Assembly (NCBI GenBank): GCA_964036045.1
Contig: OZ038378.1
Span: forward strand, 173,724,001-173,788,000
Direction of reading: 5' to 3'
Source: Eutreptiella sp. 'Long Island Sound 2002'
Taxonomy: Eukaryota > Protista > Euglenida
DNA length: 64,000 bases
The position numbers and the translations under genes were made by a program. The stretch's first letter is position 1; the number at the start of each line of letters is the position of its first letter. Shown piece by piece: positions 3,925 to 62,606 of this stretch. The notes below the pieces were generated by a model. The model saw only the letters and a list, made by a program, of their open reading frames with translations, ran no database searches and was not told the origin of the DNA.

Positions 3925-5115
3925 ATGGGCTCGGCCAAAAATGATGGGGCTTGGGACTGGAGACGTCTAAAAGACGAGGACCCCGCGGCGAAGTCAACAG
4001 CATGGGCCCACCTGATTCAGACGCCCTGGATGGCCCGTATGATCCCGCTTCAGCATCGTACAGAGGTGCTGGTGGCGGGCGTGGCAGGATGGTCTCGGGA
4101 CGGAGTCAGCTGGAGTGCGGTGAAGCTGGCCAGGACCTTCCATGAGACGCTGGGGATCTCGTTTCAATCCCCTGATCCGCAGCGGTACGTCGACGCGCTG
4201 CTGTATGGGCTGACACTTGCCTGGGGAGTAGAGGTGACTGCGTTCAGCCTGTCTGCGGAAGAGGCGGCCGTCGGGTTCGCTGTCTGCGACTTATTCGCCA
4301 AGCCGCCTGGAAAATCGGCGAGCAGGAGAGGAGGAGTGGGGATCAAGGGTGAGAGACACTCTCAGGGGAAGAACGCAAAGCCCGAGACCAACAGTGGTAT
4401 GGCTCTGGACGAGGAGGCGGGCGCCGGAGCCGGTGAGCGCGAAGGAGGTGGGGGGCCGGCCGCGGCTGAGGAGGACGAGGAGGACGAACTGACGTACAAG
4501 GAGCCCAGCTTCAAAAATGCCAGGTGGATGAGAAAGAGGCCCGGGGCCCCGCGGTGGACGGTCAAACTGTGCCGCCTGGTTGAGAGGTTAATGGAGGCCG
4601 AGGAGTCTGAGACTGCGACAGAGGTGTCCACGATCATTGACGATGTCTGGCAATTGCTCCTTGATTGCGACAAGTCGGGTAAGGACGCGGTCAAGGCAAA
4701 AATAAAGGAGGTCAAAAGGAGGAACAAGAAGAAGGCCAAAAAACAGAGGCGAAAGGAGAAAAAGAAGGAGATGAAGGAGCGCCGATCATCTCGGAGGGGA
4801 AAAGGGAGGCGCAGGTCCTCCGACTCGGATTCGTCGTCCACGGACAGTAGCAGCGACAGTGCGTCCCATACATCATCCTCGGCAAGCTCCAGCTCATCGG
4901 GGCGCCACTCAAAGCGCAAAAGCAGAGGTGGCACGCAGGGGAGCACGAGTCAGCCGGAGTTCAAGTGGATAGACGGAAAGCGCCACTTCCGCAGCAAGAA
5001 AACAGGAGACTGGGTTAATTGCGAAAACCCTCCAAAAACGGCATGCCCGGAGTGTGGTGGCCACCATTGGTGGTTTGACAGGGAGAAGCACGGGTGTAAA
5101 GGCCGAAGGAAGTGA
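3925..5115 (+). CDS. Gag-like ORF1 of YR retrotransposon (K/R/S-rich linker, C-terminal zinc-knuckle-like motif)
   Basis: Open 396-aa ORF. C-terminal CPECGGHHWWFDREKHGC. Lies immediately upstream of the YR ORF and is preceded by a C/T-rich tract with AG (3836-3883), a possible trans-splice acceptor. Confidence 0.7.
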   Translation: MGSAKNDGAWDWRRLKDEDPAAKSTAWAHLIQTPWMARMIPLQHRTEVLVAGVAGWSRDGVSWSAVKLARTFHETLGISFQSPDPQRYVDALLYGLTLAWGVEVTAFSLSAEEAAVGFAVCDLFAKPPGKSASRRGGVGIKGERHSQGKNAKPETNSGMALDEEAGAGAGEREGGGGPAAAEEDEEDELTYKEPSFKNARWMRKRPGAPRWTVKLCRLVERLMEAEESETATEVSTIIDDVWQLLLDCDKSGKDAVKAKIKEVKRRNKKKAKKQRRKEKKKEMKERRSSRRGKGRRRSSDSDSSSTDSSSDSASHTSSSASSSSSGRHSKRKSRGGTQGSTSQPEFKWIDGKRHFRSKKTGDWVNCENPPKTACPECGGHHWWFDREKHGCKGRRK

Positions 5116-7162: not shown

Positions 7163-7277
7163 GTGACCCTGTCAATGCACTCACACCGTGGGGGGAACAC
7201 TGTATTGATCTCTATATACATGCGATACCAGGATTGTTCCCGGGTGTTTGAGAAAGTCAGTCACAAACAAATTTGAC
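7163..7277 (+). repeat. 115-bp direct repeat, copy 2
   Basis: Identical to 3667-3781; begins 25 nt after the YLDD codons. Confidence 0.95.
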
Positions 7278-7379
7278 AACAAACAATCACGTAGTGGTGT
7301 CCATGACTGAGCTCACCCATCTCCAGGTCCCGCATGGATGCCACTGCTGAGTTTGTGTCCTGAGATGATGAGGGCACTG

Positions 7380-7420
7380 CCCCATCCCCATCCCCATCCC
7401 CATCCCCATGCCCATGCCCA
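7380..7420. repeat. (CCCCAT)n hexamer microsatellite
   Basis: About 7 units of CCCCAT/GCCCAT. Confidence 0.9.
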
Positions 7421-7770
7421 GTTGGGGCAGTCCAGTGGTTGGATCAGGTGCCAGCGCCACAAGAAGCGTGCACGCCACAGCATCAGAACATGCAGTGGTC
7501 GCCCCTGAGCCTGTAGAATTGCAGAGGCACCTGAAAGCTGTTGGATCATTTTGTTATCTCTTGGAAACGACCAAAGCCGTAAAACAGAATGCACGCAATG
7601 CGGACGCTTTGTCTTGCAGGTACCACGGCGACCCCATTTTTGGGCCTTCCCCCAGACAATATGGATTCATCGTATAAGGGGATGGTGTTGAGCTATCTGT
7701 GGTAAGCGCAGAAAAACGATTTTCCTATTCTTGTTGTCTGCTTTGTGTGACTCCGCCATGTCTGATGTTG

Positions 7771-46663: not shown

Positions 46664-46688
46664 CTTTCTGAGTGTCTATTTTTTTTCG
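46664..46688 (+). other. Genomic copy of the euglenid spliced-leader exon fused to a 5' UTR
   Basis: CTTTCTGAGTGTCTATTTTTTTTCG equals nt 2-26 of the Euglena SL as I recall it (ACTTTCTGAGTGTCTATTTTTTTTCG). It is followed by GGTGCA.., not a GT donor, and lies 23 nt before an ATG. Confidence 0.9.
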
Positions 46689-55365: not shown

Positions 55366-57895
55366 TCAAGCAAAGAAGTGCCTCAAGCGAGAAGTGATTG
55401 CATGGAAAACACCCCCGTAGTGGGGCAATTGGCAAAATTGGCACACACGTTGTTGAACACTGCTCTGGGGTTCGGTTGGGTGGCACGTGCCACACACGCA
55501 CGCACACACAGTCCGGCTATCGTCAAATGACACCCTGATTTGACTCCTGTGTACGGCCACTTGGGTGTAGGGAGTCATTTTTGAGTCTTTATTGTCTATG
55601 TTTTTTGAGTTTGGTGAGGTTACCAATCAGTGTCTAAGACCAAGGTTTTGATGCAAGGTTTTGGTCCATGGCTGAACAGCTTTGTGGACAATGCCCTTAT
55701 AGGCCAGCTGGTCGTGAGATGTAGTGTGCTTGGTGAGGCCAAAACAAGTGGGTTGCTATAGGGGTTGCTAGAAGGTGGATGCAACACAAATACAAAACTA
55801 GCAACCACAAGCTGTTGCCACCCTCACACTTCGAGAGATGCAAAATATCTAAGGTCATTTTCCAATTATGGGGCAGGAAAAGCCACCTACAAAGCCGCTC
55901 GGAGGCAGAAATGACCAAATGACAGACTGCGCAGAAAACGCGCTATTGCGGTGACTTGCAGCACTAAACAACACCACACATGCACTAGCTGCACTATCTC
56001 TTGGTAGGAGAGGGGCATGTGTGACTTCTAATACGCCTATTCGGCATCCACCTCGCCAAAGAGGGCACCTAGGTCTTAACATACCGGACGACTTGCAACC
56101 CCGCCACTGGGGGCCTGTAGCTTGCCTATCTTGCAAAGGCGTTGTGCCAGCTCAACAAGCTGCACTCAGGGTTGTCTTTGTCTTGGTGTGATGTGTCGCC
56201 TCCAATCTACAACAGTCGTTTCTTCACTTGGAAGAACAAGACGGTGGTTTGTGGGTATTTTATCCGCCGTGCGCGGTTGCGTACCCATGATTTTATCCAC
56301 AAAAGCACTTGGTCTTTTACTTTGCACCAGGGATGGATATCATTGGGGGACTGGGTCCGGCCCGGACTCCGCCCCCCTTGGTTCCAAAAAAGGTCACGAT
56401 ATCTAGTCACAAAAAAAAAGACCCAAAGCCGGCCATTTTGGGCAGCCCTCAACCCGTAGATGCACATGGGGAAGGGGGGGGGGGTGATGCAACAACACAC
56501 ATAACAGGCATAGAGCCCTATGGATGCAACATGGTCATTGTCATTCACTATCATCACTCAAAGTGACAATAGTGTCTTGCTCGCTGTAGCTACCCCTAGT
56601 TGACTTGTCTTTATCACTGCCACTATCGCTACCACTGCCACTATCGCTGCCACTGCCACTAGAAAGAAAAAGGCCTGCAACAACAAAATGCACACACAGT
56701 GTACAAATACCAGTAGTCACAAGAAATTTGCAGTGCAAGTAGACACAGTCACGGTAGATTTGCAGTCCGGGCAGGCACAGGAGACATTTTACTGGAGACA
56801 ACTTTTTTGGTCACAATATTTTGGGGGTTTGCACTTTCCCACTATGGCCCTTTATATTTTTCTTGACTAGTCACAAAAAATCCCCCCCCCCCCGGGACCT
56901 GGACCCCCGAGTGGCACCAAAATTGTATCCATCGCTGCTTTGCACCCTCGGGAATTGGAGAGTGCCAAGCTCAACGCCCCTCGCTAGCATAAACCTTGTG
57001 TCCTCCTTTGGTAGCGAGCTTGGCAATTGGCTCTAAGGATGGTCTCTACTTTGGGGATGGTCTTCACTACTTTCCCCTATCAAAGTCGATTGCAAGTGCC
57101 CAGTGCTCGGATCGGCAATAGGAGGGCATTCCACCGCCTTCACCTCCCGCGACAAGGCCTAGATTTTGTTTGCACATGGTTGTGGGAAAAGCTCCCAATT
57201 CGGGAGAGCCTCCATCGTATTTTTCTAGGGTGCCGATCAGCTACCCGTTTTGCACGGCCCGCGTGGATGTGTATCACTGCCTCAAGGCCTACCCTCAATT
57301 GTAGTGTACTTTTCCACCTATGCAGACCGCACCGGGGCATGTGCACTTCAATCGCATATGCATGGATTCCCCCCTGCTCTGCCTCACCATAGCGCCTAGG
57401 GTCCTACTGTGGAACCGGGGTTGTGGGGCCTGTTCCCAACCCCTTCGGGTGCTGCCAATCGTCTTGTGATGAGGTAGGTCAAAAGAGGGCACGGGCTGAG
57501 GCCTACAGCGCACAAGCAAAGCCTGATATGGTTCATGTGTCCAAGGTTTACACCAACGGTTCATCTGCGGAGGAGGCACCACACCGTGGTTTTGCTAGGT
57601 ATGGTGTGCAGTTGGTTTGACCCAGAAACATTTCCTCACTGGCCCCCCGCCCCCCCCCCCCCCTGCCATGAACGACGCAAAACCTAGTTACTTAGGCGTC
57701 ACAAGTTGCCCACCCTCTAGGACCCCGTATACGCGCGATTTGACAATATTCTACATTTCTACTTTGAGTATGTTATTTGACGTATGTGACCAAAGTTGTT
57801 GGCAGAGCTGTGTGACACCCGTTGAAATACGTGTTGATGTGTTAGCCTTGTGTATCCCCGTCTTCTAGTGTGCTGTATTTTACGTTTTTCTGAAG

Positions 57896-58196
57896 CTGGC
57901 CGAAATTTCGGCCAGGTTTTGGGTAACATTGCAAACAACTATGTGTATATGCAGTTTTTGACCCTTCTGGCCGAAATTTCGGCCAGCTTTTTGGTTTCTT
58001 GGTGAATAGGCATGATTATTTTCATTTTTCTTAGGGCTGGCCGAAATTTCGGCCAGCTTTTTGGTTTGTTCACTATTCAAGCACTTATATTCTGGTTTTT
58101 GGGTGGGCTGGCCGAAATTTCGGCCAGCTTTTCCTATTTTTGAACATGTAAGCAATTATTTCCCCTTTGAACACACCTGGCCGAAATTTCGGCCAG
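57896..58196. repeat. Array of five identical 20-bp palindromes with 49-51-bp distinct spacers
   Basis: CTGGCCGAAATTTCGGCCAG at 57896, 57967, 58037, 58108 and 58177 (periods 71, 70, 71, 69). Confidence 0.97.
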
Positions 58197-58267
58197 CTTG
58201 CAATTGTCGTTGTTCATGAGTATTACACCATACACTCCTACATAACTGTTTTCTTGTCTCAGCATTA

Positions 58268-60334
58268 ATGTCTTCTGCTATTACTGTCAATGTTGTACAT
58301 GCTGCAGTTACTGGTGCTTTTGCTACTACAGCCAAAGGGCTGTTGCGAAATGCATTACGTGGTGGGACTCTGCAAAAGCTTTTGCAATTCTGCCTCTTGT
58401 TGCGGAAGAATCGCAGGAGCCGGCACTCCCTGACACAGTTGAAGGCCGCCGCCACCGAGAAGAAGCCCCCACGATGGTACATGACATTTTTGTCACAGTT
58501 CCATGCCCTATACTGCCTGCTGCGCCGTATGGCCCTCCCATACTCTAACTGTGGGTCTGGTTACAACTGGGGTATTATGTCCTGCCGCCAACGCCGTAAG
58601 GTAGGAGTCCTTGGTCAGTGTAACACTAAGCAGGAGTCCATTCACCATCGTGCTGGACTAGCAGCACACAACTTGTGGAACACCATGCACCGTAGGCAAG
58701 TTTGTATATGGTTTGATAACCTGAGGCGTTACAGGTCGGGAGCTGATCCCCATTCACCCGACTTAACCCTAAACTGTACAGCTGTTGCTGTTTTGCACAC
58801 TACTGCCCTACCTGCATACCGGGGTCTGCCGGAGCTGGCCGAAATTGAGGCCAGGGTACCAAAGGTTGCTGATGACATCTTTCGCTCACATAGAGCATTG
58901 TTTGATCGTATTGATGTTGCCAACCAAGGTATTCAGAGAGTTTGGGTTCGTGCTCCTTTGGATATTGCCAGAAAAGATGTTCGTTCCCTCAACTGGAGAC
59001 CCTTTTTCCTGTCTGAGCTCCGCTCCGGCACACACAAAGAGCTTTTGCAACTCGTGGTTGATTTGTCATGTGTGGAACACCGCACCAGACACTGTGTTCC
59101 GCTGCTTGTGGACATGAAAATACACTTTGCCCTACTTAAGCTGTGTTATGGTGCTGCTTATGTTCCCTGGAATGTACCACAATTACTGTTGGGTTTTCCT
59201 TTGGTGTACGGAGTATGGCATAGCTATAAGTATTGCGTTGAATTGATCTACAGGGCGTTCCTGCCGTTCATTAAGTTTTTGGAGCAGGGGAACAGCCTTC
59301 AGGTTGGGTCTATCCTCCCTCGCAAGGTCAAGGTCATCCATATGGAGAAGACGTTGCTTGGACTCATGCTAGCCACATCGTCCAATAGAGGCAGACTAGA
59401 TGAGCGCGTCACTTCCCTGCTCAATAGCCAGCGGGACTTGACACCCATTCAACGCAAGGGTTTGCGTATGTTATTAGCCCTTAAGGCTTTGCTGTACACA
59501 TACTGTCCAGCTGCTTTCAGCATTGGGACTTTGGTTCGTGAGTGCAACTGGGAGGGACGGGGGGCAGGTTCCGGTATTGTAGCTAAGCAGGCACTTGAGA
59601 TGTCCCTACTGCTCATGCTGAACATCCTAAAGCCCGAGGAACAGTTAACCACGGAGTATGTGAAAACCACCGCTGTTGCTCTTTTGTTTTGGAGTCATTG
59701 GCATTCCGCTTCCCTAGGGTGTATCCACTCTGAGGAGCTGGGTGAGGCACTTTTGAGTCGGTTCTCAGCCCACTGTCGCCGCAACACTGCATGTACTAGT
59801 GTCCAACAGTCGTCTGATTTATTTCTGACACTTCCCCCTGTCCAACCCGGAGAGAAAGTTTTGCGTGGTGTGCTGACTGAGAGATCCGTGGCAATGTTCT
59901 CTGCCAATCTTAAACAATTCATCTTGACAGCCCATACACAGAGCCTGCCCATTTGTGTTCCCGTTCCGGACTATAAAGTTGAGGTGAGAAGACTGGATGC
60001 AGTTGAGGATTTGACGTTCCCCGGTACCATGTCTAGGACACGAATCACCACAGACCGTTTAAAAGTGGTTCTGTTGCATGCAATGCAAAATCTGGTTGCG
60101 CGTACCAGGGTTCCTGAGGGTGTTGAGGATTTTTTACAGACAAATGCACCTGCCCGCACTGCTGCCGAGCAAGGGGTGTTGCGTACTGCACATGCTTCTA
60201 TTCGCGCTGCCAACCGTGCACCGCCTGCTGCTCTGCTCCTGGTGGAATTGCCTTGCCCCCAAAGCCACCCCCGAAGCCCCGAGCCTGGTTGCGCAGCTGC
60301 TTTTGTCCGGTGTGCCTGTGTTCATTGCGGGTGA
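58268..60334 (+). CDS. 688-aa putative DDE transposase (DUF6589/Academ-like, insertion-domain type)
   Basis: Candidate triad WFDN (D, 58715), VDMKIH (D, 59111) and GEALLS (E, 59744), with a GVWH motif (59210-59221) in the position of the C/DxxH signature. DNL...NCTAVAV resembles the DN...T-A-x-V motif recalled for DUF6589-type proteins. Long, intronless, AT3-leaning, unlike host genes. Confidence 0.6.
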   Translation: MSSAITVNVVHAAVTGAFATTAKGLLRNALRGGTLQKLLQFCLLLRKNRRSRHSLTQLKAAATEKKPPRWYMTFLSQFHALYCLLRRMALPYSNCGSGYNWGIMSCRQRRKVGVLGQCNTKQESIHHRAGLAAHNLWNTMHRRQVCIWFDNLRRYRSGADPHSPDLTLNCTAVAVLHTTALPAYRGLPELAEIEARVPKVADDIFRSHRALFDRIDVANQGIQRVWVRAPLDIARKDVRSLNWRPFFLSELRSGTHKELLQLVVDLSCVEHRTRHCVPLLVDMKIHFALLKLCYGAAYVPWNVPQLLLGFPLVYGVWHSYKYCVELIYRAFLPFIKFLEQGNSLQVGSILPRKVKVIHMEKTLLGLMLATSSNRGRLDERVTSLLNSQRDLTPIQRKGLRMLLALKALLYTYCPAAFSIGTLVRECNWEGRGAGSGIVAKQALEMSLLLMLNILKPEEQLTTEYVKTTAVALLFWSHWHSASLGCIHSEELGEALLSRFSAHCRRNTACTSVQQSSDLFLTLPPVQPGEKVLRGVLTERSVAMFSANLKQFILTAHTQSLPICVPVPDYKVEVRRLDAVEDLTFPGTMSRTRITTDRLKVVLLHAMQNLVARTRVPEGVEDFLQTNAPARTAAEQGVLRTAHASIRAANRAPPAALLLVELPCPQSHPRSPEPGCAAAFVRCACVHCG

Positions 60335-61166
60335 GTCTGCTGATGTGAAAGCCACTGTTGCTGCTTTGAAGGCCACTGTGGCTGAGGATATGTATCAGTG
60401 TGATGTTGCACTTTACAATTTGTCCAGCAAGACCCCGCTGTACACTTCTACGTCCCATCTGGTTTCCATTTGTTCTGCCACTGCCTTTGATAACAGGCTT
60501 CCCCGTTACGTGGCTTTTACTGAAGGACCCATGTCGTCTGTGATGCCTGTTGAAATATTCTCATTTCTTTTGAGCCTGGTTCCGGTCCCAGAACGGGCAG
60601 GCAACTGGTTTTTGCTGGGGACTCTGTCTGTGTATTTTGCAAGCATGATGTCTACCAGGTTTTCCAAGGACTGTAATGTTGTGTGTGCCCTTTTGGGTGA
60701 GGAGACTGTTGTGCCCGATGACTTTGTTCAGCTCATCAGAGCAGGTATCACCAACGCCGACACGTGCCCCCCCAAGTCATGGGAGGATGTGTACCACGAC
60801 TTGGGGGCAGGTTTTCCTGTGGATTGTTCTGGGGTTAGGTATGTAGATGAGGATCCTGAGGAGCAAGATGGGGAGGCAGAGTCGCAACCAGAGACACAGA
60901 CTCCAAAGAAGAAACCCAAAACTGCCCCTGCCCCCTCACCCAGTGGCACGCAGTGCGCTCAGGCCACCCCAGCTTCCTCCTCAGGCACTGTTGCCCCTAC
61001 TGGCAAAGGTATGAATACTTTTGTGAATCATTTTTCACCATCCCAGGGTGGAAACACACAGTCACAGAACTCTGCCACTGCCAAGTCTGGTGCTGCAGCC
61101 CCTGCCAAGCAGCCTGCTAACACAGGTGCTAAGAAGCCCCGTGCATCTGGTCTGCGCAAGCGCTAA
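60078..61166 (+). CDS. Overlapping downstream ORF (probable frameshifted C-terminal part or second protein of the element)
   Basis: 362-aa open frame, protein-like from ~60255. Acidic EDPEEQDGE then a P/T/S/A-rich tail with basic NLS-like PKKKPK and KKPR..RKR. Stops 40 bp before the right-hand palindrome. Confidence 0.55.
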   Translation: MQCKIWLRVPGFLRVLRIFYRQMHLPALLPSKGCCVLHMLLFALPTVHRLLLCSWWNCLAPKATPEAPSLVAQLLLSGVPVFIAGESADVKATVAALKATVAEDMYQCDVALYNLSSKTPLYTSTSHLVSICSATAFDNRLPRYVAFTEGPMSSVMPVEIFSFLLSLVPVPERAGNWFLLGTLSVYFASMMSTRFSKDCNVVCALLGEETVVPDDFVQLIRAGITNADTCPPKSWEDVYHDLGAGFPVDCSGVRYVDEDPEEQDGEAESQPETQTPKKKPKTAPAPSPSGTQCAQATPASSSGTVAPTGKGMNTFVNHFSPSQGGNTQSQNSATAKSGAAAPAKQPANTGAKKPRASGLRKR

Positions 61167-61205
61167 TGCCAGTCCTGCTGCTTATATTGCCTGTCAGCAT
61201 GAAGT

Positions 61206-61528
61206 CTGGCCGAAATTTCGGCCAGCATGCAGTCCTCAGCCTCTTCGGCCTTTTATTATTGTGTTTCCCCATAGGCACTGCAAAAGTCTGCTTTGATTCG
61301 TCAGGTGGCAAGTATTTGCTTGTAATTGAGTATATTATGTTGCACACCCTGTTCAAATGTCACTGCTCCTGTGTTCCTTGCTCATGTCTACTGTCTTAGG
61401 TACCCATTTCAGTGATCATATTCGGAGTTTCGATGGACCTGGCCGAAATTTCGGCCAGCTTAGGCCTGTCTGTCAAATAGGACCATGTGTTTGGACTTTT
61501 TCGAAGAGCTGGCCGAAATTTCGGCCAG
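61206..61528. repeat. Three further copies of the 20-bp palindrome downstream of the ORFs
   Basis: Exact copies at 61206, 61439 and 61509; the last two are again 70 bp apart. Confidence 0.97.
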
Positions 61529-62606
61529 GTTGGTTAAAATAGGAAATACAAGTACATGCTTTGGGATAGTTTTTTGTGTGCTTCAATGAAAGGTATGTTT
61601 GGGGTTCCCTCATCTGTGGTGTATAGGGGGGTTCTGTGATCAACCTCGAACAAAGGGGAGAGAAAAATAGGCAGCCCCCCCCCCCCCCCCCACACACACT
61701 GGAATGCAGTGGTCTAAATGTAAAACAACACTATATTTTGGTGATTGAATGTCTTTATTTTGAAAATCTGTGTGTTTCCAGAAATGCAAATAATGGCATA
61801 TATTTGAAATACACACCTTGTTTTTGCATGTTGCCACCAGGGGGGTTTGGGTACCCAAAAAATAACACCCCTTTTCACATACTTTCCCCCTCATTACAAC
61901 ATGGACTTCCGTGGGCCATAGCGCCAGGTGGGGGGTGGGCAACTTGTGACGCCTAAGAGTTAGAAGGTGGAAACACGAACGAACCATACTTGCTGTCTGT
62001 CACAAGGCGCACTGGTTGAGAAACTTGAAGCACCTCTGCAAGCCATGAGTTCTGCCTGGTTATTACTTGATCCAGGACACCACCGGGTGCTGCATCCTTG
62101 TGCTATGGTTGTGGGCTCAAGGCCCCCGTAGAGAGCTCCACCTACCGATGGCGGACTTAAGCTGCGGTCCGGATGTCTGAGTCGCTGCGGGCTTTGATAC
62201 CCCTAGCACCTAGTCCAGCTAGGCAGGCTGGACTATCAATCCTGACCTTGCCCGGGGAGGCTGTCGGCAGCCGGGGATGCATGGGCGGGCAGTGGGTGAG
62301 GTGGCAGGGCACACGGTCATGCATGTGTGTCTTGGTGCTCCATGGGTGGGAACCAAGGGCAGGAGCCGTGGTTTCGTTGACGGTTGATGGCTATTAATGT
62401 CCTGGCCGCTCTTGCGACGGGGGGGTTAGGGGTTAGCGGGTTAGAGCCGTGGTTTCGTTGACGGCACGCTGTCTATATGGAGATTGTAGACCCCAGCAGG
62501 GTTGGCCTCTGTTGGGCGTTGGAACACGGAACACATGGTTATCTGCAGGTGGTAGGATGTAGGAATGTTGAACCTCGCAGTTTGCACATGAGTGAATGAT
62601 GGCCTT

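Follow-up and report, generated by a model that had tools for sequence, protein, structure and literature searches.

A DNA transposon of 4,267 bp lies at positions 57691-61957 of the window (the whole stretch of 64,000 nucleotides that was analysed), and all palindromes found in the window are inside it. The element ends in terminal inverted repeats that begin CTTAGG. The left repeat (57691-57715, + strand) is 25 bp long, starts CTTAGGCG, is 100% complementary to the right repeat (61933-61957, - strand) and is unique in the window. The pentamer AGTTA is found in identical form on both sides, at 57686-57690 and 61958-61962, as a 5-bp target-site duplication. In contigs from independent sequencing runs, similarity stops exactly at 57691 and 61957, and a loose contig end in run X2 lies directly behind 61957. 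Target duplications of 5 bp were seen at three independent insertions: AGTTA in the window, ATATG in a second copy on another contig (L001) and AACGT in a copy of a sister subfamily (L007). The inverted repeats of L001 are the same as those of the window copy, and L007 has a related one that starts CTTAGGC. Inverted repeats, flanking duplications and contig breakpoints at both ends thus identify a cut-and-paste transposon that duplicates 5 bp of its target. Given these inverted repeats, a duplication of fixed length, a transposase of the DDE/RNase-H fold and multiple copies, the element is a class II cut-and-paste (TIR) DNA transposon.

The copy in the window, L001 and a third copy (L002) are 97-99% identical inside the element and unrelated outside it. 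The full-length element is 6,535 bp long and carries two genes, A and B (L001:3424-9958). The window copy derives from this 6.5-kb two-gene element by internal deletion. Comparison with L001 by blastn places the deletion junction at 60285/60286, where 2,265 bp of the full-length element (L001:6026-8290) are missing; runs X5 and X6 have loose contig ends at 60284. Lost with the deleted segment are the tail of gene A, an internal array of three palindromes, the first two thirds of gene B and two intronic palindromes. A metatranscriptome contig of run X2 joins window position 58565 to 60785 and omits 2,219 bp, which suggests another internally deleted derivative. Pieces of the element at 90-99% identity, non-coding ends included, occur in estuary RNA libraries, for which DNA carry-over is a possible source. 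L002 holds about 480 bp more than L001 in the gene B region (about 7254-7733), either an insertion or an alternative form.

Gene A (58268-60334, + strand) is an open reading frame of 688 aa. Its reading frame is authentic to about residue 655; the sequence beyond results from a frameshift caused by a 7-bp deletion after 60232, where other copies have GCTGCTG. Gene A is 96% identical to P0001, whose cluster has 267 members. The wider family comprises 1,389 cluster representatives (E <= 0.001; clusters defined at 50% identity), almost all from short, nameless environmental contigs. Pfam gave no match for gene A or for any of 48 relatives even at E 10, and a PDB sequence-profile search with the family returned only noise. 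The structure was modelled with a pLDDT of 94.6 and a pTM of 0.91 when an alignment of 100 sequences was used (pLDDT 41.6 with 14 sequences), and consists of an RNase-H core with a helical insertion. The best matches among solved structures were P element transposase, with Z 10.0 across 345 residues, Hermes, with Z 8.3 across 283, and Tn5; ISCth4, retroviral integrases, Transib and RAG1 came after them. Each of the 20 highest-ranking structures was a transposase or an integrase. Three residues, D150, D282 and E493, are invariant among 48 sequences and are candidate catalytic residues. The initial annotation had called this reading frame transposase-like, and the predicted RNase-H fold with its P element and Hermes matches bears this out. 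Gene A is a DDE-type transposase of RNase-H fold by its structural model, with a predicted catalytic function, and its family is a well-modelled transposase without any curated family.

The closest neighbours of gene A carry the name DUF6589. Proteins of this type, known from fungi, cnidarians and molluscs, were the closest predicted structures, with a TM of 0.65 across some 535 residues, and the closest in language-model features, where they made up 49 of 60 hits at a score of 0.92, whereas no HMM match to DUF6589 was obtained at E 10 in 48 members of the gene A family. No assigned function for DUF6589 was found in the literature sources searched. In the model, gene A resembles the P element and Hermes transposases in that its RNase-H core would be split by an all-helical insertion domain. 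Unlike P elements and hAT elements, the family lacks THAP, BED and hAT-dimerisation domains by Pfam (48 members, E 10), makes a 5-bp rather than an 8-bp duplication and has other termini. Membership of the hAT superfamily was not supported: neither a C-terminal dimerisation domain nor a BED domain was found in the 48 members at E 10, and the similarity to Hermes is one of fold only. A hAT group with 5-bp duplications, hAT5, has been described (PMC12730594). Membership of the P element superfamily was likewise not supported, with no THAP or GTP-binding domain by Pfam and a 5-bp duplication; the Z of 10.0 reflects a fold relationship only. The accessory nuclease of Academ elements is of the XPG type. 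Academ duplications measure 3-4 bp (AcademX) or 9-10 bp (AcademH), and the accessory enzymes are a nuclease and a helicase (PMC10045372). The present element differs in its 5-bp duplication and in a gene B without a Pfam or NCBIfam match, two traits that do not support membership of Academ.

The second gene, gene B, is represented in the window by a C-terminal remnant (60286-61166, + strand, delimited by blastn against L001) within the open reading frame 60078-61166. Gene B is present in all lineages compared; it is conserved across both Euglena subfamilies, and conservation is weak in two metagenome relatives (L005 and L006). Its first two exons carry the invariant motifs D..GQxR and GGQHxxxAA, in a conserved domain that is split by an intron; these exons are deleted in the window copy. 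We take the two motifs to resemble the ParB/DGQHR boxes. Language-model features placed ParB_N and DUF6551 at 0.88-0.89, a weak lead only. Searches of Pfam with all pieces of gene B and of NCBIfam with its exons gave nothing even at E 10, and a PDB sequence-profile search with exon 2 gave only noise. When the joined exons were compared by hhalign, P1 ParB scored no better than nine control P1 proteins, in a test that used a single divergent ParB and a 4-sequence profile. A feature search with the C-terminal part of gene B gave no usable match.

Five exact copies of the 20-bp palindrome CTGGCCGAAATTTCGGCCAG make up an array at 57896-58196, upstream of gene A. The copies start at 57896, 57967, 58037, 58108 and 58177, so that the start-to-start distances are 71, 70, 71 and 69 bp. 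None would be expected by chance, and 100 shuffles of the sequence gave 0 matches. The array ends at 58196, 71 bp before the ATG of gene A at 58268. The five identical copies, their 69-71-bp period and this distance to the reading frame had all been described in the initial annotation and were confirmed at the same coordinates. Three further exact copies of CTGGCCGAAATTTCGGCCAG, at 61206, 61439 and 61509 (61206-61528, spacing 233 and 70), had been overlooked. The three right-hand sites, like the five left-hand sites with their spacers, are also present in L001 and L002. A degenerate palindrome with 2 mismatches lies in the coding sequence of gene A (58835-58854, + strand), where it is read as ELAEIEA; it has 3 mismatches in L001, and the sister subfamily does not keep these amino acids. 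One palindrome site also falls within the 3' part of gene A in each of the metagenome relatives L006 and L008.

The spacers of the left array are 51, 50, 51 and 49 bp long. Their identity to one another is 53-67%, compared with 55 +/- 5% for shuffled spacers in the same alignment. As had been noted earlier, they differ from one another, and they are essentially unrelated except for their T-rich ends; a weak likeness is kept among array units 2-4 (TRF 81% over 2.4 units). When 13 sites of the full-length copy were aligned, conservation was found to be sharp-edged and to comprise the 20 bp and an adjoining CTT, nothing further. The sites within an element are thus identical, with sharp conservation edges and with spacers at shuffle-level identity, which supports the proposal that the palindrome itself is under selection. 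Palindrome matches were also confined to the element: 36 were found in 17.5 kb of element DNA from three elements, against 0 in 66.9 kb of flanking DNA.

The arrangement of the sites was compared across copies and relatives. The full-length element of subfamily 1 has five sites upstream of gene A, three just after it and 1 + 1 in the introns of gene B, recognised as short gaps that lack conservation and separate conserved coding segments; another 1 + 2 lie beyond gene B. The sister subfamily 2, at about 46% protein identity, has successive groups of four, two, one and two sites with a period of 69-70 bp, and one of its sites shares its gene B intron with subfamily 1. The consensus palindrome of subfamily 2, CTGGGCGAAATTTCGCCCAG, differs from that of subfamily 1 by the symmetric pair C5G/G16C, so that the dyad is kept. 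Both subfamilies reside in one genome, with sites that differ by this one symmetric pair. Three relatives from metagenomes (L005, L006 and L008), at about 30% identity, each have a different palindrome. In L006 the palindrome TTCGCTCCATGGAGCGAA forms a four-site array upstream of gene A and pairs in gene B introns, with a period of 67-69 bp. L005, an element of 6.5 kb with a perfect 23-bp inverted repeat, has 13 sites of the form TGCGCGC-N4-GCGCGCA, and at either end some 60 bp separate the outermost site from the inverted repeat; the element's duplication matches at 4 of 5 positions (GTAAG/GTATG), with a microsatellite adjoining. L008 has nine sites of the form GTCCGCGAA-NN-TTCGCGGAC. The period of about 69 bp is absent in L005 and L008, and phasing is therefore not universal across the family. 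The non-coding DNA is otherwise unalignable across lineages; the layout nonetheless persists. Two of the intronic palindrome pairs of L006 lie in 113-nt blocks that are 79% identical (L006:4396-4508 and 4951-5063), and the pair-bearing introns may have arisen, in introner-like fashion, from a single small cassette that was duplicated or inserted. One further contig, L004, is transcript-like, 2.6 kb long and has scant flank.

The best explanation of these data, to which we assign a probability of about 0.7, is that the palindromes are phased sites for a dimeric DNA-binding protein encoded by the element, for which there are two candidates. It is supported by the transposon context, the confinement of the palindromes to the element, conservation of the site only, the kept layout, the dyad that is kept through change, the private palindromes of each lineage and the co-travel of genes A and B. 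Against it count the non-integer number of helical turns in 69 bp, the lack of this period in L005 and L008, and the strong folding of the array as RNA. The array is a built-in cis element of the cut-and-paste transposon at 57691-61957, and each 20-bp palindrome would be the site for a symmetric dimer of the element-encoded protein. The constant centre-to-centre spacing of about 69 bp would allow neighbouring dimers to touch, or to wrap or bridge the DNA. The sites could mark the element's own DNA for end pairing, for assembly of the transposition complex or for regulation of the element's genes. The window copy, which has lost the front of gene B and kept both arrays, would be served only in trans by intact copies.

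Which protein binds the sites is a more tentative matter. The product of the conserved gene B, possibly ParB-like, is a reasonable first choice at somewhat less than even odds. The N-terminal part of the transposase is only a little less probable, and the remaining probability falls to neither of the two. The gene B product is slightly preferred over the transposase because the ends have inverted repeats of their own, which the initial annotation had missed, and palindromes are also found in introns and in the intergenic gap. The initial annotation had offered phased binding sites for a dimeric transposase in an undescribed element family. A mobile element is indeed present, no description of it was found and sites for a dimer are the best model; the part that fares less well is the transposase as binder, since sites also lie between genes and in introns, far from the ends, and gene B is an equally good candidate. 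A broader reading, of fairly low probability, is that the element belongs to an unnamed, widespread transposon lineage of superfamily rank with a private code. Each lineage would have its own palindrome, set in phased arrays both at the element's ends and wherever it is non-coding, and its own accessory reader. The reader might be a ParB-like clamp of the nucleus, loaded at the palindromes, from which it would coat or bridge the element. If this reading is true, a lineage could tell its own copies from those of a sister lineage in the same genome.

The alternative that survives best is that the palindromes act as hairpins in transcripts, or as DNA cruciforms or hairpins, and serve as signals for processing or termination or as precursors of hairpin-derived small RNAs; this takes in the second suggestion of the initial annotation, minus its likeness to CRISPR. 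Each site could form a G+C-rich stem of 8-10 bp, often with a T run after it, and a consensus scan rates the sites as terminator-like. The array folded as RNA into much more structure than shuffled sequences did (z -12.8). The symmetric covariation between subfamilies is equally expected from a stem of RNA or of single-stranded DNA, and the variable centres of 2-4 nt in L005 and L008 suit a loop as well as an uncontacted spacer. However, sites are also found ahead of the first gene, in the stretch that adjoins the inverted repeat, as well as beyond the last gene and in introns, and with positions so varied no single RNA role suits them all. The T-richness is a trait of the whole + strand (AT skew about -0.12 to -0.14) and is found on both sides of the sites. 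All Rfam families scored far below threshold, and look-alikes of miRNA hairpins arose from the pairing of palindromes. A constant spacing in which the spacer sequence is free to vary is characteristic of protein arrays. We infer that the site is read by a protein rather than as an RNA or DNA hairpin, and regard a hairpin function as distinctly improbable. An array of snoRNAs was considered and rejected: the spacers have no C/D boxes by eye, and the same design is found in relatives that are not euglenids.

A protein of the host could also read the sites. In this explanation, whose probability is low, the element would have recruited a transcription factor or chromatin protein of the host, and the palindromes that it binds would act as promoter, enhancer or insulator for both genes. 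In favour of this, arrays are found immediately upstream of gene A and again in the gap that separates it from gene B. Yet the palindrome differs from lineage to lineage, even between two subfamilies of the same genome, and the motif is absent from the 66.9 kb of flanking host DNA. Since the palindromes are lineage-specific, co-evolution with a private protein fits better than a shared host factor, and the preferred reading remains that of a binder encoded by the element.

It is very unlikely that the array is a neutral minisatellite whose core seems conserved through recent duplication or gene conversion. The weak likeness of units 2-4 would suit such an origin. Some copies in the genome also seem to vary in the number of array units, as judged from a go-back joint and loose ends in the array. 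Conversion should have made the spacers alike too, yet these sit at shuffle level; moreover, the core is found at isolated sites with unrelated flanks, and the layout persists across lineages in which non-coding DNA cannot be aligned. The poor fit to an ordinary minisatellite that had been pointed out before is thus upheld, with a core that is 100% conserved between spacers of shuffle-level identity.

The resemblance to CRISPR that first drew attention to the array, and the related proposal of a guide or decoy RNA array, were not supported by the comparison of copies. Spacers acquired from invaders and used as guides are hardly credible here: what favours them is geometry only (identical, partly palindromic repeats and different spacers of constant length), whereas the spacers of the window copy, L001 and L002, at three different loci, are 92-100% identical and in the same order, have no match elsewhere in about 130 kb of sequence compared, and belong to an array within a eukaryotic transposon whose reading frames hold no Cas-like domain and no Pfam family. 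Given the identity of 92-100% between copies, the spacers are inherited with the element and not acquired. By the yardstick that the initial annotation had itself proposed, the CRISPR-like reading is refuted. No Rfam family reached threshold, and introns of the relatives contain the palindromes one at a time or as pairs, which does not suit guide or decoy RNAs either. With CRISPR arrays the element shares the repeat-spacer geometry only; it differs in its fixed spacers, the absence of cas genes and its location inside a eukaryotic transposon.

Arrays of binding sites near transposon ends have precedents. In En/Spm, 12-bp motifs are bound by TnpA, a second protein that is not the catalytic transposase, and inverted pairs are bound cooperatively. 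Ac/Ds elements have subterminal hexamers. In the hAT element Hermes, subterminal repeats are bound by BED domains (PMC10368747). The present arrays resemble these in having many copies of a short motif near both ends, separate from the terminal repeats. In the known elements the binder is encoded by the element, whereas here it is a candidate binder only. The present sites further differ from such subterminal arrays in that they are long perfect palindromes (18-24 bp), have a fixed period of about 69 bp, occur also between genes and in introns, and are replaced from lineage to lineage.

Closer in some respects are systems of the ParB type. At plasmid centromeres such as F sopC, bound by SopB, and at scattered parS sites, palindromes are bound by dimers of the ParB family. 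The window array is similar to sopC in its identical palindromes in tandem with a fixed period, and palindromic sites that are tandem or scattered on the same element, as in modules of the ParB/parS type, are present here. It differs from plasmid centromeres in that there is no ParA partner, the carrier is a nuclear transposon of a eukaryote and the spacers are not conserved; unlike in P1 parS/ParB, gene B has no similarity to P1 ParB detected at the sequence level (hhalign, one divergent ParB). In red algae, Plavaka elements carry PAG3, a protein with a ParB-like N-terminus and a putative 2OG oxygenase, with tandem inverted repeats adjacent (bioRxiv 10.1101/2025.02.11.637652). Binding of PAG3 to its own element is a suggestion of those authors (bioRxiv 10.1101/2025.02.11.637652). 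Both cases combine a eukaryotic DNA transposon, an accessory gene and arrays of inverted repeats, with the ParB-likeness of gene B being a weak lead. The transposase there is of the Plavaka/EnSpm type, in contrast to the DUF6589-like protein with a P/hAT-like fold here, and Pfam and feature searches of gene B did not show an oxygenase domain.

A literature search for the 20-mer, DUF6589 and PF20231 returned nothing relevant, and the element family was not found described. Motif arrays in transposon ends are known already, as is the pairing of a ParB-like gene with an array, proposed for red algae. The transposase family, the long private palindromes, their placement in introns and the constant phasing of about 69 bp in common with a distant relative are new. 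What had looked like CRISPR in a eukaryote gives way to a transposon family of high copy number whose ends are clean and whose palindromes are a very strong candidate for a protein-DNA recognition site. The palindromes of the two subfamilies, one symmetric pair apart, are a natural specificity swap for whichever protein reads the site. The family has 1,389 clusters, mostly environmental, and no Pfam model; once it is named, repeats in protist genomes and in metagenomes would be better annotated.

Several minor features were observed around the element and elsewhere. Long poly-C tracts lie just outside the left end (57643-57663) and inside the right end (61675-61691); other such tracts occur nearby (e.g., at 56882) and in another contig (L003), and seem to be common in the genome. 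To the right of the element (window 62363-62464), an exact direct repeat of 21 bp (at 62363 and 62444) brackets a telomere-like GGGGTTA run at 62422-62444. In L003, an array with a 30-bp period of a different, A/T-flanked inverted motif (L003:7350-7700) is found beside a MULE-like gene with a weak match to PF10551, and three tandem units of 85 bp (L003:7847-8101) occupy the neighbourhood of the same gene. This seems to be another transposon of this genome with repeat arrays of its own. Finally, what we take to be a spliced-leader sequence of the Euglena type, which makes a euglenid the probable host, lies at about window positions 46664-46688, after a (CA)n tract and before an open reading frame, and the locus looks like a retrocopy of a trans-spliced mRNA.
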